Of a stretch of DNA of 64,000 nt, positions 189 to 34,940 are shown piece after piece. How positions within the stretch are numbered: position 1 is the stretch's first letter; every line of letters starts with the position of its first letter. This stretch comes from Mytilus trossulus (lineage: Eukaryota): contig NC_086378.1 of assembly GCF_036588685.1 (NCBI RefSeq), forward strand, positions 91,140,001 through 91,204,000, in the 5' to 3' direction. The notes below the pieces were generated by a model that saw only the letters and a list, made by a program, of their open reading frames with translations, did no database searches and was not told the origin of the DNA. Position numbers and translations under genes: made by a program.

Positions 189-435
189 TAATTCTGATTT
201 TCCGTGTTGTTTAAAAACATGCATGCAAGTCAAAGGAAATATTAAACATGAAGAATATGAGAAGAACATTATAGGAAAGATGTTTAAGTTCAATCCTTTT
301 ACCTTTTAAAGCAAGACAATCATAAGAATCTGAGATGTTCTTCAATGTTTAAAATAAAACAGTTGACGTGAGGGCATGGCCCTGAGTCAATGGTATAAGT
401 CTACAGATTGCATGAAAGCAATCGTATCCCAAAAA
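189..435 (-). mobile_element. Second copy of the terminal ~245 bp of the 26091-33690 element
   Basis: Collinear with ~33436-33692 and ends in the same GCAATCGTATCCC followed by an A run. Confidence 0.8.
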
Positions 436-12508: not shown

Positions 12509-13620
12509 AACTAGATACCATTGAGATGGGAGCCATCTCTGTGGGCCCCGCTGTCAATAACGTGGGGTAAATAAGTTGTATGGATAATCTGATATGAAGC
12601 ATTATTTGAAGTTATTACATAGTCTCATGTGTGATTTTATTCTAAGAAAATGTTTGTCAGGTATAAAGTATGAAATAATAACAGCTGTCCTCTCAAAATA
12701 TAGTGTGGATCAAATTTGTTAGCGATGGACAGACCAACCTTTGACCTAGGAAGTTGTACATACATCATGACACACCCTCTGGTGTTGGTTAAAATGGATG
12801 TCAAGTATAATATTTGAAATCATAACAGTTCTCAAGATATGGAGCGGACACGATCTTCACCACAGGACACAGGGTTGTCAACTGAAACCAAAGTTAACCT
12901 TGACCTTTGACCTAGGAAGTTGTACATACATCATGACACACCCTCTGGTGTTGGTTAAAATGGATGTCAAGTATAAACTTTGAAATCATAACGGTTATCT
13001 AGATATGGAGCGGACACGATCTTCACCACAGGACACGGGGTTGTCAACTGAAACCAAAGTTTTTGACCTTGACCTTTGACCTAGGAAGTTGTACATACAT
13101 CATGACACACCCTCTGGTGTTGGTTAATAAACATGTTAAGTATTAAGTATAAAATCATAACGGTAATCTAGATATGGAGCGGACACGATCTTCACCACAG
13201 GACATGGGGTTGTCCGCAACTGAAACCAAAGTTTTTGACCTTGACCTTTGACCTAGGAAGTTGTACATACATCATGACACACCCTCTGGTGTTGGTTAAA
13301 ATGGATGCCAAGTATAAACTTTGAAATCATAACGGTTCTCAAGATATAGAGCGGACACGATCTTCACCACAGGACACAGGGTTGTCAACTGAAACCAAAG
13401 TTTTTTTACCTTGACCTTTGTACTAGGAAGCTGTACATACATCATGACACGCCCTCTGGTGGTGGTTAATAAACATGTAAAGTATAAAGTATGAAATCAT
13501 AATGGGTCTCTAGATATGGAGCGGACACAAAGTTAAAGTGTTACGGACGGATGGACGGATGGACAGACGGACAGACTGATCACTATAGGGCGACCCGCCT
13601 AAAGGCGGAGCCCTAATTAA
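12509..13620 (-). mobile_element. Complete HINE (non-autonomous Helentron, DINE-1-like architecture)
   Basis: On -: TT, subTIR AGGGCTCCGC with adjacent stem-loop, (GTCY)n microsatellite, ~170-bp tandem core, second subTIR GCGGGGCCCAC, hairpin GAGATGGCTCCCATCTC, CTAGTT. Confidence 0.85.
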
Positions 13621-23119: not shown

Positions 23120-24720
23120 CACTAGACAAGAATTACAATCCAGTCCCCTCCTCTCACCTAGCCAAGAATTACAATCCAGACCCCTCCTCTCACCTAGCCA
23201 AGAATTACAATCCAGTCCCCTCCCCTCACCTAGCCAAGAATTACAATCCAGTCCCCTCCCCTCACCTAGCCAAGAATTACAATCCAGTCCCCTCCTCTCA
23301 CCTAGCCAAGAATTACAATCCAGTCCCCTCCTCTCCACTAGCCAAGAATTACAATTCAGCCCCCTCCTCTCCACTAGCCAAGAATTACAATCCAGTCCCC
23401 TCCTCTCACCTAGCCAAGAATTACAATCCAGTCCCCTCCTCTCACCTAGCCAAGAAATACAATCCAGTCCCTCCTCTCACCTAGCCAAGAATTACAATCC
23501 AGTCCCTCCTCTCACCTAGCCAAGAATTACAATCCAGTCCCTCCTCTCACCTAGCCAAGAATTACAATCCAGTCCCTCCTCTCACCTAGCCAAGAATTAC
23601 AATCCAGTCCCCTCCTCTCACCTAGCCAAGAATTACAATCCAGTCCCCTCCTCTCACCTAGCCAAGAAATACAATCCAGTCCCCTCCTCTCCACTAGCCA
23701 AGAATTACAATTCAGCCCCCTCCTCTCACCTAGCCAAGCATTACAATCCAGTCCCCTCCTCTCACCTAGCCAAGAAATACAATCCAGTCCCCTCCTCTCC
23801 ACTAGCCAAGAATTACAATTCAGCCCCCTCCTCTCACCTAGCCAAGAATTACAATCCAGTCCCCTCCTCTCCACTAGCCAAGAATTACAATCCAGTCCCC
23901 TCCTCTCACCTAGCCAAGAATTACAATCCAGTCCCCTCCTCTCACCTAGCCAAGAAATACAATCCAGTCCCTCCTCTCCACTAGCCAAGAATTACAATTC
24001 AGTCCCCTCCTCTCACCTAGCCAAGAATTACAATCCAGTCCTCTCCTCTCCACTAGCCAAGAATTACAATCCAGTCCCTCCTCTCACCTAGCCAAGAATT
24101 ACAATCCAGTCCCCTCCTCTCACCTAGCCAAGAATTACAATTCAGCCCCCTCCTCTCACCTAGCCAAGAATTACAATCCAGTCCCCTCCTCTCCACTAGC
24201 CAAGAATTACAATCCAGTCCCCTCCTCTCACCTAGCCAAGAATTACAATCCAGTCCCCTCCTCTCACCTAGCCAAGAAATACAATCCAGTTCCTCCTCTC
24301 CACTAGCCAAGAATTACAATTCAGTCCCCTCCTCTCACCTAGCCAAGAATTACAATCCAGTCCTCTCCTCTCCACTAGCCAAGAATCACAATCCAGTCCC
24401 TCCTCTCACCTAGCCAAGAATTACAATCCAGTCCCCTCCTCTCACCTAGCCAAGAAATACAATCCAGTCCCTCCTCTCACCTAGCCAAGAAATACAATTC
24501 AGTCCCCTCCTCTCACCTAGCCAAGAATTACAATCCAGTCCCCTCCTCTCACCTAGCCAAGAATTACAATCCAGTCCTCTCCTCTGCACTAGCCAAGAAT
24601 TACAATCCAGTCCCCTCCTCTCCACTAGCCAAGAATTACATTCCAGTCCCCTCCTCTCCACTGGATCATAATCTTCACTAGCCAAGAATTACAACCCAGT
24701 CCCCTCCTCTCCACTGGATC
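23120..24720. repeat. 35/36-bp minisatellite, ~44 copies
   Basis: Unit CTAGCCAAGAATTACAATCCAGTCCCCTCCTCTCAC. Confidence 0.97.
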
Positions 24721-25086
24721 ATAATCCTTGGCTGGCAAAGATGTCACTGCTGACTAATGTCAAGAGAAAATCTACATTATTAAACAGTATAACAAATTTT
24801 GTGGATGGCTCTGTCAATGTCTGTAAATAAGCAGGTTTAATTATTCTTAAACATTTTTTTTCAATGATTGAATGATCTCCTCTATGCTGCTCTGAAAACT
24901 TGGAATGCATGTTAAGGAACTGCAAGTTGTAATAGGTAGTCTTTAAAAAGGATGTTCATTGTCCATGAAATTATACTTTTAGAAAGAGTTAAAACAGATT
25001 ACTAAAGACAACAACTGAACACTGTATGATAGCATTCCAGTCAAAGAGAAATACATGAAAATAAGAAAATTTAAAGTTAATACTAA

Positions 25087-25762: not shown

Positions 25763-25891
25763 ACTAAATTGAGTAAAAAGTAATAAATCTAAATAATAAT
25801 TAAAGGAGATGTTCTCTTCTACATGTACAGGTCATATGTGTTTTCTTCTAGATATACATGTCATATGCATTCTCTTCTATATATGTCATAT

Positions 25892-26090
25892 ATAGATATA
25901 GGAAGATGTGGTGTGAGTGTCAATGAGACAACTCTCCATCCAAATAACAATTTATAAAAGTAAACCATTTTAAATGTACTGCCTTCAACACAGAGCCTTG
26001 GCTCATACCGAACAACAAGCTATAAAGGGCCCCAAAATTACAAGTGTAAAACCATTCAAACCGGAAAACCAACGGTCTAATCTATATAAA
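25892..26090 (+). mobile_element. Left half of an interspersed repeat split by the 7.6-kb insertion (right half ~33690-33935)
   Basis: Similar to 36705-36880. The motif order AATGAGACAAC...TCCTGACTT[A/G]GGACAGG matches the uninterrupted relative at 7640-7940 (inverted). Confidence 0.65.
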
Positions 26091-27020
26091 TCAAAGAGCA
26101 GAATGCTCTGAGGGATACGATTGCCATAGTTTTCATTGACACATGTATAGCAGTTCTGCCAAATTTTCATTAAACAAATGCACGAGATTTGGCCAAAATT
26201 CAAAAGATCAAAGAGGAAAGAAATAGATCCAAGAATACTGTTGCAAAAAAAGCATGAACATACGCGAGTCTCAAGCATTTTTGGCCGGTAACCCTGGTAC
26301 AGCTGGATAGTATTATTCTCTAAACTAATTCAACTGCACATGCAAAATGTAACAATCTGAATAGTCACTCAACTTAAAGAATAGCCAATCCCCGTTACAA
26401 GTGTATGAGCCATGTACTTATTGTGTTTTATCGAATTATAGTTATCCTGTATGATTGTAAACTCGTACCATTAAAAAAAAACTTGTACCAATGCAAACTC
26501 GTACCATTGCTTACTCGTACCAACTTATTTAAATGCATTCAAATGGTGTTAAATGATGAATATACATGATATACGTTACTTTCACCCAATACCTCTTAAG
26601 TCTGTAAAATGTATATAATTTGAAAGTACAATGACCAATTTGTAGCTTATGTTCCTTGAATATTGGATAGAAAATACTGTGGCAGATGTAGATAATTAAG
26701 GTATATACAGTTTCACCCGAAGAAAATTTTTCATGAATAATTAAATCTTAGCAGTTAGTCAAAATGATTGCCAAAATTATTTTTACTGTCTATAAATAAA
26801 TGTAACAATGAAATTTAACTGATTCCTGTTAAGGGGGTCCGCATTTTCCCCGCAAAAAAAGCACATGGCTTTCAACAATTGTAAACATAGCATTCAATTT
26901 GTGATCATGGATTACAGCTTTAATTAACTTAAATTGGATATATACATATTCAACATGTTCAATTTTAATAAGGTACAGTTAAAGAAATGTTTTAACTTTC
27001 CTCTGGATTAAGTTCTACGT

Positions 27021-27165
27021 ACAGTGGCGGATCCAGAACTTTTCCTAAGGGGGAGCCCGCTGACTGACCTAAGAGGGGGCCCGCTCCAGTCATGCTTCAA
27101 TGATTCCCTTTATTATCAACCAAATTTTTTCCACAAAAAAAGGGGGGGGGCTGGATCCGCCTATG
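27021..27165. mobile_element. Short GGCGGATCC-family MITE (other copies ~35960, 39610, 43341, 45650, 46680, 48482)
   Basis: CAGTGGCGGATCCAG...CTGGATCCGCC inverted ends. Confidence 0.75.
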
Positions 27166-27434
27166 TTCTAGTTTGAAAGATCAGTTAAAACATTAATGCT
27201 TTAAAACATTCTTTATTTTTGTCTAAGTTTTCATTTAACTCCTGTGTAAAATTCAAGTAATTCAACTTTATTTCTATTAAGTTTACAAACAGAAACCCAT
27301 AAAACATCATATTTTTTATATATTTTTCTGAATGTTACGACTTCCCAGTAGTACAAATTAACTTTTTTGGTTCCAATGCCGTGTTATGAGTTAACTTGCT
27401 TCCGTATCTTATCACCGTAATTCTAGGAGGAACC

Positions 27435-27517
27435 CTAAACTGGACCCCTATTGTGTTCACTTATCGCTACACTGACCTTCGGTGCGAAGCTATATATAGA
27501 ACGGCGGACCAGTTTAG
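27435..27517. mobile_element. 83-bp MITE with 8-bp TSD
   Basis: CTAAACTGG...CCAGTTTAG flanked by GAGGAACC on both sides. Confidence 0.7.
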
Positions 27518-28741
27518 GAGGAACCACATTTCTTACTCTTTAATTATTGAAGTTTCTTTGGGTCAGAGGGCATGACTCCTTTCCGTACACACTCCTCTGT
27601 TTACATTGAGATCGTTCTTAATATAATACGACGTTTACCGGCATTAACGAGTCATGTAGGGGAATGAAACTACACTTTTAAAAAAAATGGATCATGAGTA
27701 GTGATTTTTCCAAATAAAAAAGGCTAAAAAATAGCATTTCAGAAGCATTTTAAAAGAATTCACGATCCCTCTAATATAAAATTGTCCATATTTAAAATTA
27801 GCCCTGATGAAGTTTTTTTATTATTTTGATATAATTTGTCCAAAAAATAGTTCAACACATTCACTGTGAAAATAATATCAAGAAGGGCAGTTGGGATTTG
27901 TTTTATTTCCATTTATTTTATGAAAGAGTTGCACTATACATATATGAAATAACTGTGTTCTCACACCAATTGACCTTGAAACCTCACTCATAATTATGCA
28001 TTCTTTTCAAATATATATATTTGGTGGTTATACTTATTTAGTTCTTAGAAAATTGTCTCAATTATCATGATTACGGTTAACAACCTAAGAAAAGATGTCT
28101 TTATCATGGTTAACAACCATAATTATATAATCCTTTTTCAAGCAATAATTTAATCATAAAAGTAAATAACAAATCTTTTGAGCTAAAAATAAATAAATAA
28201 TTTACATGTATTTGAAAGAAATTTTTCTCTTGGCAAAAAAATTAAAACTGTTTTTTTTATCTTGGGTTAACAGGAATAATTCCAATTAAATAATGTACAT
28301 GTATGAGGTGAGGTCTAAAGACAGTTGTAGTGATTGTTAAGTACTATTGTATTGAAAACTATAACAGTACTCTGTTCAGATCGGTTTATTTTTACTTCTT
28401 GCTCCAAATAACCAATTAAACCAAATCATAACCTTAAACATTTTATCAGATATTTTAAAATTCAAAAACGTATATATATCTTTTAAACTCCTGCATTGTG
28501 ATACATTTTTGAATTAACGAAATCGTAAAGTTATGATATACATGTATCAAATTTTGGCACCTCAAGTCTCAATAATTCAAACAGAAACTATAATATTTTT
28601 TCAAATGCTTGGAGTATATATTCTTGAAAGTGATTATCTTTTTTCTACAAAATAGGTGCAATTTCTAGTCCTCAATAAACTTTTGCAGCCATATTGTCTA
28701 AACTATTTAAATCAGTGTTAATGAAAACCAATATTTAATTA

Positions 28742-30436
28742 TCACTTTACTAAAGGTGGTTGCAAATTAGATACAGCAGAACAAATTGTAAAAATCTCAT
28801 TTGCCAAAGGAACCAAAGTAATAGGCAATGTGTTTTTCAAAATTTGAAAACACTTGATTCGGCCAATAGCCCTTTCAACATGAATTCTGACATTGGCAAC
28901 TGCCTTTGTTTTCAGTACATTTTCCTTAGTCATCTGCTCTGACCCCTGACCAGGTGGTGGTATAATTAATTTAGCTTGTCTCATCACCAAGTCTGATTGT
29001 ATGGGAAAACCTCTATCTGCCATTACCTCATCAGTTGGATCAATGAGATTTAAAAAACCACTGTCCATTACAATAAAGCGATCAGAGGCCCTCCCGTCGT
29101 AAGCTTCGGAAATGTACGAAATGCTGCCATTTGGTGCCATTGCCACTAAAAACTTAAGCGTGTTGTTTTTTTTGTAGTCGGACCAAGTTTGTGCTTGTAA
29201 TTCCATATCTCGGGGTCTTTCAATGAATATTTCAGTGCAGTCTATGATACACCTAAGATTAGGAGCAATTGAACTATATACATGTGGCAATGTCTCTTTT
29301 GTTATTTCTTTATCTGGCCAATGTATAAGAGGCTTCAACTCGTATGCCAGAAACTTCAACCATGTATTCAACACCTGTGAGACAACTGAGAGTTGAACAC
29401 CAAAAAAATCACCCAGAAGCTCACTGTTCATACCAACCTTACACTTCATCAAAGTCATGACAAGTTCATCTTTGACAGACAATTTTCTTTTGGGACCAAA
29501 TTTTTTAGGTGATTTTTTGAAAACCCTTTTCGCTTTCGTGCTTACGATTTTCTTGCTTCCACTCCAATAGGTCAAGCGCTTTGCACGTGGCAACAAATGC
29601 TTGTATAGCCTATCAAATACATCTGCATTTGGCAGCCCTGTGTACAATCGTGTTTTGCTGTCATCTTTCACTATGTTATTTGTCATAGTGGTATGAACCA
29701 TGTTTTTTGTACCTTTGCTGTGTAGTTGTTGTTGTAAATAAATTAATTGAGAATTAAGTTTATTGATAGTTTGTTGTTTGGTTAAGCAACCTTTACATAC
29801 ACAGTTGGAGGAACAGTCACATTTAGAAGCATATGAATGGTCTGATTTATTAAGATGATGGTCAGATTGCAGCTTTTCTTTACATGTACTGTTTTTCTCT
29901 TTATTTATACTAGTGTAACAGTGGTCAGATTGTGCAGATTCTTTAACATAGTCAATATATGGTGTAGCAGTATATATTTGAATGTCTTCTGGTAAATTTG
30001 TGTCTTTAATGTCTTGCAATGCAGATGACTCAATTGTACTTGTATTTTCAGAGACAGACAGTGACTTGCTTTTCTTTGGTAATTGATGTTTAACAATTAT
30101 TTTTCTGGATGGTCTGACTGTTGTTTTTACGGCGTGCCCTAGTTTTACAGATGGATAAGGAGTACATTCCTCAAAATGAATTGAACAAACCCTGTCATGA
30201 GCTTTTGGAGTCCAGTTTTTATTAGTTGTTGGGTCAACTCTATTTACTTGAATCATCCATTTTTTCCTTAACTCAGGATTTTTATTTTCTGTTGGAAAAG
30301 GAACCAATTTGAAGGGTGGTTCACAATCACATGACCTTGTTCCTAAATTACACTTATGAACTTGACACAAAGTTTTCATCCATTTGTTGAGGTGGTATGT
30401 GGAATTACCACACCCAACAACACAACAAATTCTCAT
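28742..30436 (-). CDS. THAP + HTH + DDE_Tnp_4 transposase, PIF/Harbinger-ISL2EU type (564 aa from the first ATG)
   Basis: THAP C2CH (CCVVGC...W...RVCSIHF); TRLYTGLP; LSVKDELVMTLMK HTH region; intact triad IIDCTE, MADRGF and RIHVERAIGRIK. The ORF-track start at 30445 is TTG; the first ATG is at 30436. Confidence 0.93.
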   Translation of the reverse strand: MRICCVVGCGNSTYHLNKWMKTLCQVHKCNLGTRSCDCEPPFKLVPFPTENKNPELRKKWMIQVNRVDPTTNKNWTPKAHDRVCSIHFEECTPYPSVKLGHAVKTTVRPSRKIIVKHQLPKKSKSLSVSENTSTIESSALQDIKDTNLPEDIQIYTATPYIDYVKESAQSDHCYTSINKEKNSTCKEKLQSDHHLNKSDHSYASKCDCSSNCVCKGCLTKQQTINKLNSQLIYLQQQLHSKGTKNMVHTTMTNNIVKDDSKTRLYTGLPNADVFDRLYKHLLPRAKRLTYWSGSKKIVSTKAKRVFKKSPKKFGPKRKLSVKDELVMTLMKCKVGMNSELLGDFFGVQLSVVSQVLNTWLKFLAYELKPLIHWPDKEITKETLPHVYSSIAPNLRCIIDCTEIFIERPRDMELQAQTWSDYKKNNTLKFLVAMAPNGSISYISEAYDGRASDRFIVMDSGFLNLIDPTDEVMADRGFPIQSDLVMRQAKLIIPPPGQGSEQMTKENVLKTKAVANVRIHVERAIGRIKCFQILKNTLPITLVPLANEIFTICSAVSNLQPPLVK

Positions 30437-31936
30437 ACTATACAACTTCTCTTTAACATTACAAGGAAACTTGTTAAATCTTGACCTTTACTTTGACTAA
30501 TACCTGAAAGAAACAAAGACCAATAAAAACCTATTTCCACCAAGTAATAAACATTAAAGAGCAACCTGTGTAAACTGAATAAAGTGGGCACCTCTATTTT
30601 GTCAAATTCTAATAGATGTTAACTGAAACAGTTTTAGACTAAACAGATCTGCATTATTAGCTGATGACCAGTACCTTGTGCCAATTAACCAAGATATATT
30701 ACAAAACTGTTATGCAGTGTCCAACTATCAACTATGCAAATCCTTGGAAAAAAATAACAAATGACTGACAGCAGTATAAACTTTATAGATTGTTTTTTTT
30801 TTTTTTTTATAAATAAGGGATTTTTTTATTTGTGATGTGACATATGTGTTCATGTTGTTATTTCTATATTTATTTTTAGTAGTTTTTATACATGTATGTA
30901 TTGACATATGGTCTGAATTTTTTTTACATCTCCTTCATTTATTCATTATGATTAGGAAATTGTATGCAACTCTGAATTTGGAATAACTACTGCTGTTTCT
31001 AGGCAAGTCTAAAGTATTAAAACTGGTGAAAGTGAATGTCAACTATATATATACCATGATAAACAGAGCATTTAATATTTCTTGTGTTTTGAGTGTTGGG
31101 TTTTGTCAATGGCCACATATATTGGACATAGCATATTTACTTTTAAGTTATACTGTTTCCAGGTCACACATAAATTTGTAGTTTACATGTAGGTGGGATA
31201 ATTGAAGTGCCTTTCTTGCAAATACCTATTTTTAAGTTGTGCTTATCTTATTTAAAAATAAATAAATACAAATGTGCTTAAATCATGAACATACAGTGTT
31301 ACAGTATTTATTCGAGTATTGTGTATAGACTAGTGGTAAAAAAAGTCTGTTTATAGATATTGAAAGATGTGGTATGAGTGCCAATGATACAACTATCCCT
31401 TCATTTTAATAAGCCATCACATACCGCAAGCTATATAAAGTTATATGCCAATGATAAAGGCCATAACTGGACCCAACAATTACTTGAATATAATCATTCA
31501 ACACGGCAGACAAATATATGCATAATCTCGTTCTGTTAATAGTTGACACTTGTCAGGAAAAAATATATAGAAAAAAGCTTTACAAGACGCATTATTGCCA
31601 TCGGTATTGTCATGACCGTCCAATATCTCTGTATTTTAATTTTTCTAGAACAATTTTCCATGAAACTTATTTGAAAACCCTATCTTTATCATTCAATACT
31701 ACCGTTTGTTGCGTAACAATAAATATTTTTCTACCTGCGCAACGATTACTAACGTTTTAAATCATAATTCACGATATCCGTTGTGTGTTTATCCCGTTTG
31801 TTTATCTGCAATGACCTTTCGACCTTAGTGGGTGATCTCCCTTGATTTTTTTCGCACCTGCGCATTACAGAACTCCGAACTCGCTTATTCTTCTTGACGA
31901 ATACTTCGAAAAGGGAGACAACTCGAAACGATAACA

Positions 31937-32424
31937 TGTATGTATGTATGTACTCGAGATTCCGCCAATGTAGACGCACCCCTTGATTGACTGCAAGGGT
32001 ACAGCGGATCCATGTACACTCCCTAAGGATTAATGGAGATGTGTCCTTTACAATATTATCCCACCACCAGAACAATCCCCACCCAACACCGCCCAAGGGA
32101 GCATGTAGGACACCGGGAAGTCTGTTATTATGGTGGAGGAAGCCGAAGTACTCGGAGAGAACCACCGGGCCACTCGGTGGAAACAGACAAACCAGAGAGA
32201 TATCAGAAGATTGATCTCCAGGTCAAAGTAGGGGACAACTTTGACCAACCGAGGCCCCCAAAGTACCCAATCTAGTTTAAACTCCGGTCTGGGTACCAGA
32301 GATGTGTGTGAGAGGGTGAAAATTACCCTTCTAATGTACTGATATTTTTAGCACCCCGAGTGAGAATCGAACTCGGGACCTTCAGCACAGTAGCCATCGG
32401 TCTTAACCACTTGACCACGAACTC
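31937..32424 (-). mobile_element. tRNA-derived SINE
   Basis: On -: A box TGGTCAAGTGG, B box GAGTTCGATTC, V/Meta-SINE-like core GGTGGTTCTCTCCGAGTACTTCGGCTTCCTCCACC, (TACA)n tail. Confidence 0.8.
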
Positions 32425-33940
32425 ACATTGGACGATTCCATTTCTGCTGAATGGGGTGTTATAGGTAATTTTTACGATGAAACATTAATTTTAATTTAAA
32501 TTATGCATGTGATTTAAAATTATGCAACAACAATAGCCCGCCATATGCAGACAGACATAGAAAGAATCCCATGAGTTTCAAATTAATCAATGAAGCGGAG
32601 AATCACTCAATCTGATACCCCTTGAAATCAGGAAAACTACACGCATGTGGGGTCTCACTAATTAGCGACAAAAAGCGTCAAGAAGCGACAAGAAGAAAAA
32701 TAATAAGTGACAAAAAGCAACAAGAAGCTATTTAGCGACAAGAATACATTTTGTTATCACATACATTAAAATTTTTTTTAGGATTATATTGAAAGATGAA
32801 GAAATAAAAAAAATTCGATGAAGAGATTGTGTACTTTTTATTATCATATTGATAGGTGTAGAAATTAAACATGTGTAAGAGCAAAGGAAATGTAAACGCT
32901 ATAAAATGAAAATAAAAACAAAGATTTGTCACCTTCCTTTTGAAGGATTTAATAAAACAAAAACATGAAATATTATTTCCTTCCTAACTGTACAATTAAT
33001 TTTTCCTGATAGGGCCAACATTAGCTGTGGCTTCACTCTAAGGTAATACACAATTAAGAGCACCAAATGAGATTAACTAGGTGCGTGTCCTTTGTTTTAT
33101 TGCAACAATAACATCCATTAACACCTTCATCAATTACACGCACCAGAATATAAAATTATTGTACCGAATAGTGAACACCTGTTGAAAACTCAAGATTGTC
33201 ATCAGTTTCCTTTAATCTTCAATCTATATGCATAAACATGATTTCTTTATGAGAGTACAGTATCAAATATCAGTTTCATAACGGTAAAATATAGAAATAC
33301 TCCACTTCAGTTCTTGACAGTGACAGAAATAGAATTATCGATCGGCTTTCAGAGAACTCTCGCAAGTTATCAAAATTTGGGAATTCCCTCTGACGTGTTT
33401 CTAAATTTATAAAAACACTAAATATAAATACTGTTTAATTCTGATTTTCCGTATTGTTAAAAACACGCATATAAGTCAAGGAAAATATCACACATGAAGA
33501 TTATGAGTAAAACATTACAGGAAAGTTGTTTATGTTCAATTGTTTTGCTTGTTTTTACCTTTTAAAGCAAGACAATCATAAGAATCTGATATGTTGCCGA
33601 ATGTTAAGAATAAAACGAATGACGTGAGGGAGTGTGTCATAGGGTCAATGGTAAAAGTCTACAGATTGCTTGACAGCAATCGTATCCCAAAAAACGAGAA
33701 ACGAGAAACATGTATAAATTAATTAAACAAATGACAACTACTGTACATCAGATTCCTGACTTAGGACAGGTGCAATCATTTGCAGCGGGATTAAACATTT
33801 TAATGGTACCAAACCTCCTCCCTTTTTCTGAACAATAGCATAACATCTCAACATAGAAAAACACACGATAAAATATCAATTGGCAGGATTAACTCAATCA
33901 AAAATTGAAGATTTACACACTATGAACGAATAAATTTGAT

Positions 33941-34940
33941 ATGCTATGTTCTCTTCTACATATAAACATCATGTGTTCTCTTCTACATGTACAGGTAATA
34001 TGTATTCTCTTCTATATATCATATGTGTCCTTTTATACATGTACATGTCACATGTTCTCTTCTACATGTACAGGTCATATGTATTCTCTTCTATATATCA
34101 TATGTGTCCTTTTATACGTGTACATGTCAAATGTTCTCTTCTACATGTTCAGGTCATATGTGTTATTTTATACATGTACATGTCACATGTTCTCTTCTAC
34201 ATGTACAGGTCATATGTATTCTCTTCTATATATCATATGTGTCCTTTTATACGTGTACATGTCACATGTTCTCTTCTACATGTTCAGGTCATATGTGTTA
34301 TTTTATACATGTACATGTCACATGTTCTCTTCTTCATGTTCAGGTCATATGTATTCTCATCTATATATCATATGTGTTCTTTTATACATGTACATGTCAC
34401 ATGTTCTCTTCTACATGTTCAGGTCATATGTGTTCTTTTATACATGTACATGTCACATGTTCAGGTCATATGTGTTCTTTTCTATATATCATATGTGTTC
34501 CTTTATACATGTACATGTCACATGTTCTCTTCTACATGTTCAGGTCATATGGGTTTTCTTCTACGTTTACATATTTTAACTGGTCATATATGTGTTCTTT
34601 TGTACATGTACATGTCATGTGTTCTCCTTTACATGTACATGTGAAATCTATAAATACATGTCATATGCGTTCTCTTCTATATATACAGGTCATATAGTTC
34701 TTTTATATATGGACATGCCATATATGTTTTTTTATACACGTACATGTCATGTGTTCTCTTCTACATACACATGTCATATGTGATCTCTTCCACATGTACA
34801 GTTCATGTATTCTATTCTTTTTATAAATGTCATGTGTTCTTTTATACATGTACAGGTCATGTGTTCTCTTCTACATATACTATACATGTCATATGTGTTC
34901 TTTTGTACATGTCATGTTTTCTCTTCTACAGATACATGCC
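33941..34940. repeat. Degenerate ACATGT-rich satellite with a local 135-bp higher-order period; continues 25811-25890
   Basis: TTCTCTTCTACATGTACAGGTCATATG units on both sides of the nested insertions. Confidence 0.85.

Follow-up and report, generated by a model that had tools for sequence, protein, structure and literature searches.

A segment of the Mytilus trossulus genome raises the question of whether a cut-and-paste transposase gene belongs to the rolling-circle ends that enclose it. The segment lies in the window analysed here, a stretch of 64,000 nucleotides from contig NC_086378.1 (positions 91,140,001 to 91,204,000 of the forward strand, renumbered from 1), in which ends of Helentron type flank an open reading frame (ORF) for a THAP-DDE transposase. 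A preliminary description of this DNA read the arrangement either as a Helentron carrying a captured THAP-DDE gene or as an undescribed DDE family with asymmetric hairpin ends, and it named beforehand what would instead reveal simple nesting, namely inner termini with a target-site duplication (TSD) around the ORF, and other copies of the outer element without it. This is what we found: the ORF is missing from each of the 28 other outer-element copies that could be read, and the family to which it belongs has its own terminal inverted repeats (TIRs) and an AT duplication elsewhere in the genome. The seeming hybrid is thus two ordinary nested elements, a non-autonomous Helentron (HINE) on the outside and a transposon of ISL2EU type within, and we find no evidence that a gene was captured or that a new DDE family is involved. 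As to how the locus arose, we consider it probable that the ISL2EU-type transposon simply nested in the HINE and that its left end was then truncated by deletion.

The outer element is one HINE copy, read on the minus strand from 33693 to 26089, whose ends are common to at least 30 copies at 96-99% identity. At its 5' end stands a terminal T run (33689-33693, AAAAA on the plus strand), present in 36 of 36 right-end copies read, with flanks that diverge beyond it. Adjacent to this run lies the 5' subterminal inverted repeat (subTIR) GGGATACGATTGC (33676-33688, minus strand), which forms a perfect 13-bp pair with the same sequence at 26112-26124 on the plus strand; on the element strand this 3' subTIR reads GCAATCGTATCCC. 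The pair is identical in all copies read, and a pattern count found four matches to GGGATACGATTGC in the window at up to two mismatches, against 0.57 expected from shuffles. Just inside the 5' end, GATTGC (33664-33669, minus strand), a short inverted repeat that complements the inner half of the 5' subTIR, faces GCAATC (33676-33681) across a 6-nt spacer. Two nucleotides past the 3' subTIR comes a palindrome, AGAGCAGAATGCTCT (26095-26109, minus strand), found in all copies and computed to fold into a hairpin with a 6-bp stem and a 3-nt loop (-4.5 kcal/mol, z = -2.0). The hairpin is followed by the last 6 nt of the element, TTGATT (26089-26094, minus strand; AATCAA on the plus strand). On the plus strand the left edge reads ...TATATA|AATCAAAGAGCAGAATGCTCTGAGGGATACGATTGC... 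and the right edge ...GATTGCTTGACAGCAATCGTATCCCAAAAA|ACGAG...; the region is free of N runs. The T run, the subTIRs, the partial inverted copy, the hairpin and the terminal TTGATT had all been recognised in the preliminary description, with coordinates off by one or two bases. Published hallmarks of HINE/DINE-1 elements are 12-15-bp subTIRs, an inverted repeat by the 5' subTIR, a 3' palindrome after the 3' subTIR and boundary T strings (PMC4067079, PMC7492417). Since all of these are present here, we assign the element to the HINEs, and the earlier call of Helentron/HINE-type ends holds.

We then characterized the family in the window's own genome (1.30 Gb, 14 large contigs). Searches with each HINE end returned matches of 97-99% identity among the best 40 of 645 and the best 40 of 1400 candidates. 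Comparison of at least 30 copies fixed the limits of the element: the common sequence begins at AATCAAAG (26089) and stops after CCCAAAAA (33693), and the flanks outside are unrelated. The 36-nt 3' end, comprising subTIR, hairpin and TTGATT, has 276 genomic matches at no more than one mismatch, while the reversed control has none. Complete copies are about 3.4 kb long (L061-L063), identity among copies is 96-99%, and a 3.4-kb copy contains no ORF longer than 126 aa; tandem repeats are limited to short ones of 10-18 bp, with no central satellite array. The outer element therefore belongs to the HINEs and is a non-coding rolling-circle transposon of an ordinary sort. The 7.6-kb size of the window copy results from two later insertions, and about 570 bp near 33241 that other copies possess is absent from it.

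Aligned with the 3.4-kb copies, the window copy shows two extra blocks, at 27653-31886 and 31939-32424. At the position of the first block, 28 of 28 other readable HINE copies have an empty site (GAGTTAATTC, GAGTTAATTCTTC), in the context ...AACGAGTTAATTCTTC..., and in HINE contigs from four public sequencing runs 27652 is followed by TA alone and then directly by 31887. Because those 28 copies and the contigs of all four runs are empty, the 4.2-kb block is not part of the HINE family.

This first block carries the transposase gene, a 564-aa ORF at 28742-30436 on the minus strand with a THAP domain (residues 7-94, E = 7e-5), HTH_Tnp_4 (320-372, 5e-10) and DDE_Tnp_4 (401-560, 9e-46) in Pfam. 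As had been reported, it is the only long ORF: the element holds no other above 80 aa. Its catalytic triad, D399, D474 and E521, is intact and invariant in 19 homologues from bivalves, a priapulid, amphioxus, echinoderms, cnidarians and fish; the window ORF has an aspartate at position 447 (G447D), where 17 of 18 relatives have glycine. The protein shows 97-98% identity to several distinct proteins of 563 aa from Mytilus edulis and M. galloprovincialis, among them XP_071171061.1 and VDH94981.1, and to one of 542 aa from M. coruscus. Several near-identical Mytilus proteins of this kind point to a multi-copy mobile family in the genus, not to a single conserved host gene. In the M. trossulus genome the intact ORF was found once (the 100% match), the next best matches being fragments with stop codons, so the composite of HINE and ISL2EU element has not been copied.

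Independent evidence for a separate inner family came from its right end. The element that holds the gene, a left-truncated ISL2EU-type DNA transposon (27653-31886, minus strand), is absent from other HINEs and has independent copies elsewhere: about 11 other loci carry its right end at 88-99% identity, and the matches end at 31887-31889 with no HINE sequence beyond. The 4.2-kb block belongs to an independent ISL2EU-type family. At 31871-31886 (plus strand) lies the sole TIR left in the window copy, 16 bp whose reverse complement is the family TIR, AAGCGAGTTCGGAGTT. The preliminary description had found no inner TIRs; it was right that the window contains no TIR pair but overlooked this single terminus, and the inner ends were missed because the left one is deleted in this copy. 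Searching with the last 19 nt of the inner element gave 20 genomic sites on both strands. The termini of the family in the genome number 19, and at six loci they form inverted TIR pairs 2.9-7.1 kb apart, namely at C1:104.40M (two in tandem), C5:24.90M, C7:35.13M, C12:58.11M and C14:51.17M.

The target site could be read from the same termini. AT follows 17 of 17 non-tandem termini of the family, and ATT follows 13 of the 17. Both family ends read outward as GCTT|AT, which indicates that the duplication is the palindromic dinucleotide AT and not a 3-bp TWA. The HINE empty site, GAGTTA|AT|TCTTC, contains just such an A|AT|T target, and the right junction in the window consists of the TIR, AT and TCTTC; comparison of empty site and termini identifies the AT at 31887-31888, followed by T at 31889, as the surviving copy of the duplication. 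These are the properties by which ISL2EU is defined, namely a target A|AT|T within which AT is duplicated and a transposase that combines DDE, HTH and THAP domains, usually accompanied by a second ORF with a YqaJ domain (PMC4482050). Elsewhere in the genome, more distant DDE_Tnp_4 ORFs (32-46% identity) lie tail-to-tail with YqaJ ORFs 1-3 kb away, at C7:36.26M, C3:81.57M, C6:72.20M and C7:58.81M. We also observed at C1:104398632-104412264 two 6.8-kb two-TIR elements of the family arranged head-to-tail with 4 bp (AATA) between them, a spacing that departs from the AT rule of the other termini.

Three related classifications were considered and rejected. PIF/Harbinger proper, with its 3-bp TWA duplication and Myb/SANT second ORF, is ruled out by the GCTT|AT termini and by the HINE flank resuming at 31887. 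Likewise, a reading of TCA/TTA as a 3-bp TSD of Harbinger type is ruled out by the outward-reading termini and by the empty site. Spy inserts between AAA and TTT without duplication; here the flanks are AT(T) instead of TTT, and the empty site has one AT where filled sites have two.

Having defined the right end, we examined how the block ends on the left. The junction 27652|27653 falls about 140 bp into a miniature inverted-repeat transposable element (MITE) of about 455 bp nested in the ISL2EU element. The right two-thirds of this MITE remain (27653-27966, plus strand), as aligned with full MITEs in L068, L069 and L070-L086. The MITE has the TIR GGTCCGAGTACACAGTTAT, duplications of about 4 bp and more than 1000 candidate copies; it is complete in L068 and L069, and contigs of another organism extend leftward of 27653 into the missing MITE part. 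TA and one copy of AT are missing from the window when it is compared with the empty site. No second TIR occurs in this region: the genome-wide terminus search places only one there, and the repeat search found no inner TIR pair. YqaJ gave no match within C6:91166089-91173693, the window HINE. The copy thus has a right TIR only, where ISL2EU elements have TIRs at both ends; this marks it as a truncated member, and the family assignment stands. By analogy with relatives, the lost stretch would likely have included the YqaJ gene, downstream of the transposase. We rejected a boundary common to L068 and L069 as the left terminus of the inner piece, as it is really the edge of the nested MITE plus 75 bp that only those two loci have. 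At some loci the MITE recurs every ~1750 bp within a larger tandem unit, for example in ten copies at C2:83.507-83.523M.

Several observations weigh against this reading of the locus. The two-TIR elements elsewhere have in common with the window copy only the terminal ~480 bp (84-92%) and give no transposase or YqaJ match, so they look non-autonomous; no complete autonomous reference copy of the inner family was seen in this genome. The family TIR starts with AA and not with the GG usual for ISL2EU. The left TIR and left TSD are not demonstrable in this copy, and its two-ended insertion is read from the right junction alone. As for the outer element, a search covering 20 kb on the body side of each of the 99 HINE 3' ends listed (of 276) gave no Rep match, and a Rep/Hel partner was not identified.

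The history that we favour, nesting followed by truncation, would comprise three steps. The HINE would have entered the A/T run of an older ~393-bp repeat lying in a 27-29-bp satellite, without target duplication; as the literature on such elements implies, it was presumably mobilised in trans by a Rep/helicase(/endonuclease) for which the subTIRs and the 3' hairpin serve as recognition signals. Later, the DDE transposase of an ISL2EU-type element would have placed that element at an AATT site within the HINE, with duplication of AT. A deletion spanning the junction would then have taken the left TIR, the left part of the element and 4 bp of HINE (TAAT), with its breakpoint inside the nested MITE. 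The presumed outcome is an open transposase ORF in a one-ended copy that its own enzyme could no longer excise, enclosed by unrelated HINE ends.

The strongest competitor keeps the nesting and dispenses with the later deletion: the ISL2EU DNA would have entered already truncated, either by aberrant one-ended transposition or as a degraded excised element ligated into a break. A left junction without an element end and a HINE loss of only 4 bp would fit such an event, and a young copy at C9:682887-684913 (98% identity) is cut on the same side with its right TIR kept. However, at the right junction a perfect TIR is followed by AT within an AATT site, which is what normal strand transfer predicts, and a simple junction-spanning deletion accounts for the loss of exactly TA and one AT. 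We therefore hold entry in truncated form to be possible but rather unlikely.

Much less can be said for the two readings of the preliminary description. In the first, the HINE would have gained the transposase segment during rolling-circle replication, by template switching or filler-DNA repair. Capture of host DNA is known for Helitron-type elements (PMC7492417), and the left junction of the insert is indeed not a transposon end. Against this, the captured segment would have to end by chance at an ISL2EU TIR, abutting an AATT site and mimicking an AT duplication; the piece belongs to a family with 16-bp TIRs and an AT duplication of its own; moreover, the composite exists in a single copy, with the ORF found once at 100% and the insert missing in 28 of 28 other HINE copies read. 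Gene capture is accordingly very improbable. In the second, the hairpin ends and the THAP-DDE transposase would form one unit, a new DDE family with asymmetric ends. The ends and the ORF do lie physically together, and the subTIR starts with GG(G)A like many TIRs of the PHIS (PIF/Harbinger-ISL2EU-Spy) superfamily (PMC4122938), but hundreds of copies with these ends have no such ORF, the transposase belongs to a separate ISL2EU-type family with other TIRs and an AT duplication, and the outer ends make no duplication. We regard this reading as refuted.

A further consequence would follow from the intact HINE ends. A Rep/helicase could still move the whole 7.6-kb unit and so spread the open THAP-DDE gene as rolling-circle cargo, and the one-ended copy could also serve as an immobile source of transposase for non-autonomous relatives with two TIRs; we think this scarcely likely. 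If true, the nesting of transposons would be a route to gene capture. That the HINEs are mobilised by a Rep/helicase is itself something we infer from their structural match to known HINEs. Helitron_like_N has 115 genomic matches, many within open frames of 2000-3100 aa, so the genome does hold autonomous elements of Helentron type. Dozens of these matches fall in frames of 2800-3100 aa that run without interruption, and several such frames have equal length at different loci, which suggests that the genome currently contains intact autonomous elements of Helentron type.

The host site of the HINE was reconstructed from paralogues. The window retains the left half (25893-26088) and the right half (33694-33886) of the ~393-bp repeat, as shown by paralogue comparison, and uninterrupted paralogues in L066, L080 and L028 read CTATATAAACAAAACGAG at the site, in line with the earlier remark that the outer element splits another repeat within an A run. 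These paralogous empty sites indicate that the HINE entered an A/T run without duplication. The lack of a TSD at the outer ends, also noted earlier, is borne out by the same empty sites and by six HINE copies in which both flanks were read. On the element strand, 20 of 30 loci have T directly after the 3' end, with A/T-rich sequence beyond it; the exact cut point within the T run cannot be placed. The reported satellite on both sides of the HINE, with a 27-29-bp unit, occupies 25810-25884 and 33947-34938.

Two loci elsewhere bear on the relation between the HINE and its host repeat. In L006 (C1:111862808-111863199), a second HINE has entered a copy of the ~393-bp repeat, 90% identical, at the very position used in the window (CTATAT|AATC), with HINE parts 97% alike; either that A run was targeted repeatedly or the two loci stem from an old duplication. 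In L066, at 1096-1489 (C11:18.97M), the ~393-bp repeat itself sits inside another HINE copy, between the positions equivalent to 26650 and 26655 of the window. Such reciprocal nesting implies that both families were active in the same period.

The second extra block is an interspersed repeat of 486 bp (31939-32424), absent from other HINE copies. Its candidate copies number at least 695; among the best 40, identity is 81-100% (90-100% in 39 of them), and nearly all are near full length. Matches of up to 100% occur at C10:75413614, C10:76019631 and C17:3922389, a level of identity that indicates a very recent insertion. A (TATG)n-like run opens the repeat. Although it looks like a short interspersed element (SINE), we do not label it a tRNA-derived SINE, as neither ARAGORN nor Rfam gave a match. 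The locus as a whole is ordinary layering for a transposon-rich genome, from the satellite through the 393-bp repeat and the HINE to the truncated ISL2EU element with its truncated MITE, plus the separate 486-bp repeat.

Other parts of the window contain further repeats. The terminus noted earlier at 189-435 (minus strand) is the 5' (T-run) end of a related HINE subfamily, 82% identical and with the same subTIR. By eye, 12509-13620 is likewise HINE-like, in agreement with the preliminary description; its centre holds five repeats of ~165 bp, it contains a GGAC/GGAT-type microsatellite, and close to one end lies the palindrome GAGATGG...CCATCTC. At 24000-24726 there is a 36-bp minisatellite, CAGTCCCCTCCTCTCACCTAGCCAAGAATTACAATC, with about 18 copies at 91% identity.

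What the analysis offers is mainly a correction. It also documents a young HINE family with exact ends, a length of about 3.4 kb and at least 276 copies. Alongside it stands a small ISL2EU family for which the TIR and the AT duplication are defined; in this assembly its one open transposase gene lies in a crippled copy. For annotation it carries a caution, namely that a deleted inner end makes a nested insertion resemble cargo.

Compared with known systems, the outer element resembles HINE/DINE-1 (Thomas, Vadnagara & Pritham 2014, PMC4067079), Cg_HINE of Crassostrea gigas (PMC7492417) and the bivalve Pearl/MgE elements in its 13-bp subTIRs and in the inverted repeat nested against the 5' subTIR. 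As in HINE/DINE-1, a stem-loop follows the 3' subTIR, T runs mark the boundary, the 3' flank is T/A-rich with no duplication, and the non-coding element is present in hundreds of copies; the targets of HINE/DINE-1 are TT or T-rich and undergo no modification (PMC4067079, PMC7492417). Unlike a typical HINE, the window family is long (~3.4 kb), has short tandem repeats in place of the central satellite, and has its palindrome only 6 nt from the end. As with the Cg_HINEs, an autonomous partner with the same ends was not found for the window HINE family.

The inner element, for its part, resembles ISL2EU of the PHIS superfamily (Han et al. 2015, PMC4482050) in combining THAP, HTH and DDE domains with an AT duplication in A|AT|T, in forming TIR-bounded elements of several kb, and in having relatives in the same genome that carry a YqaJ ORF. 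It differs from ISL2EU as described there in a TIR that starts with AA instead of GG and, in the window copy, in having one TIR and no YqaJ ORF. Taken together, the locus recalls gene capture by Helitrons and Helentrons in that a protein-coding gene lies between ends of rolling-circle type. It differs in that the composite has not been amplified and in that the gene came by its own transposition, with a TIR and AT at an AATT site.

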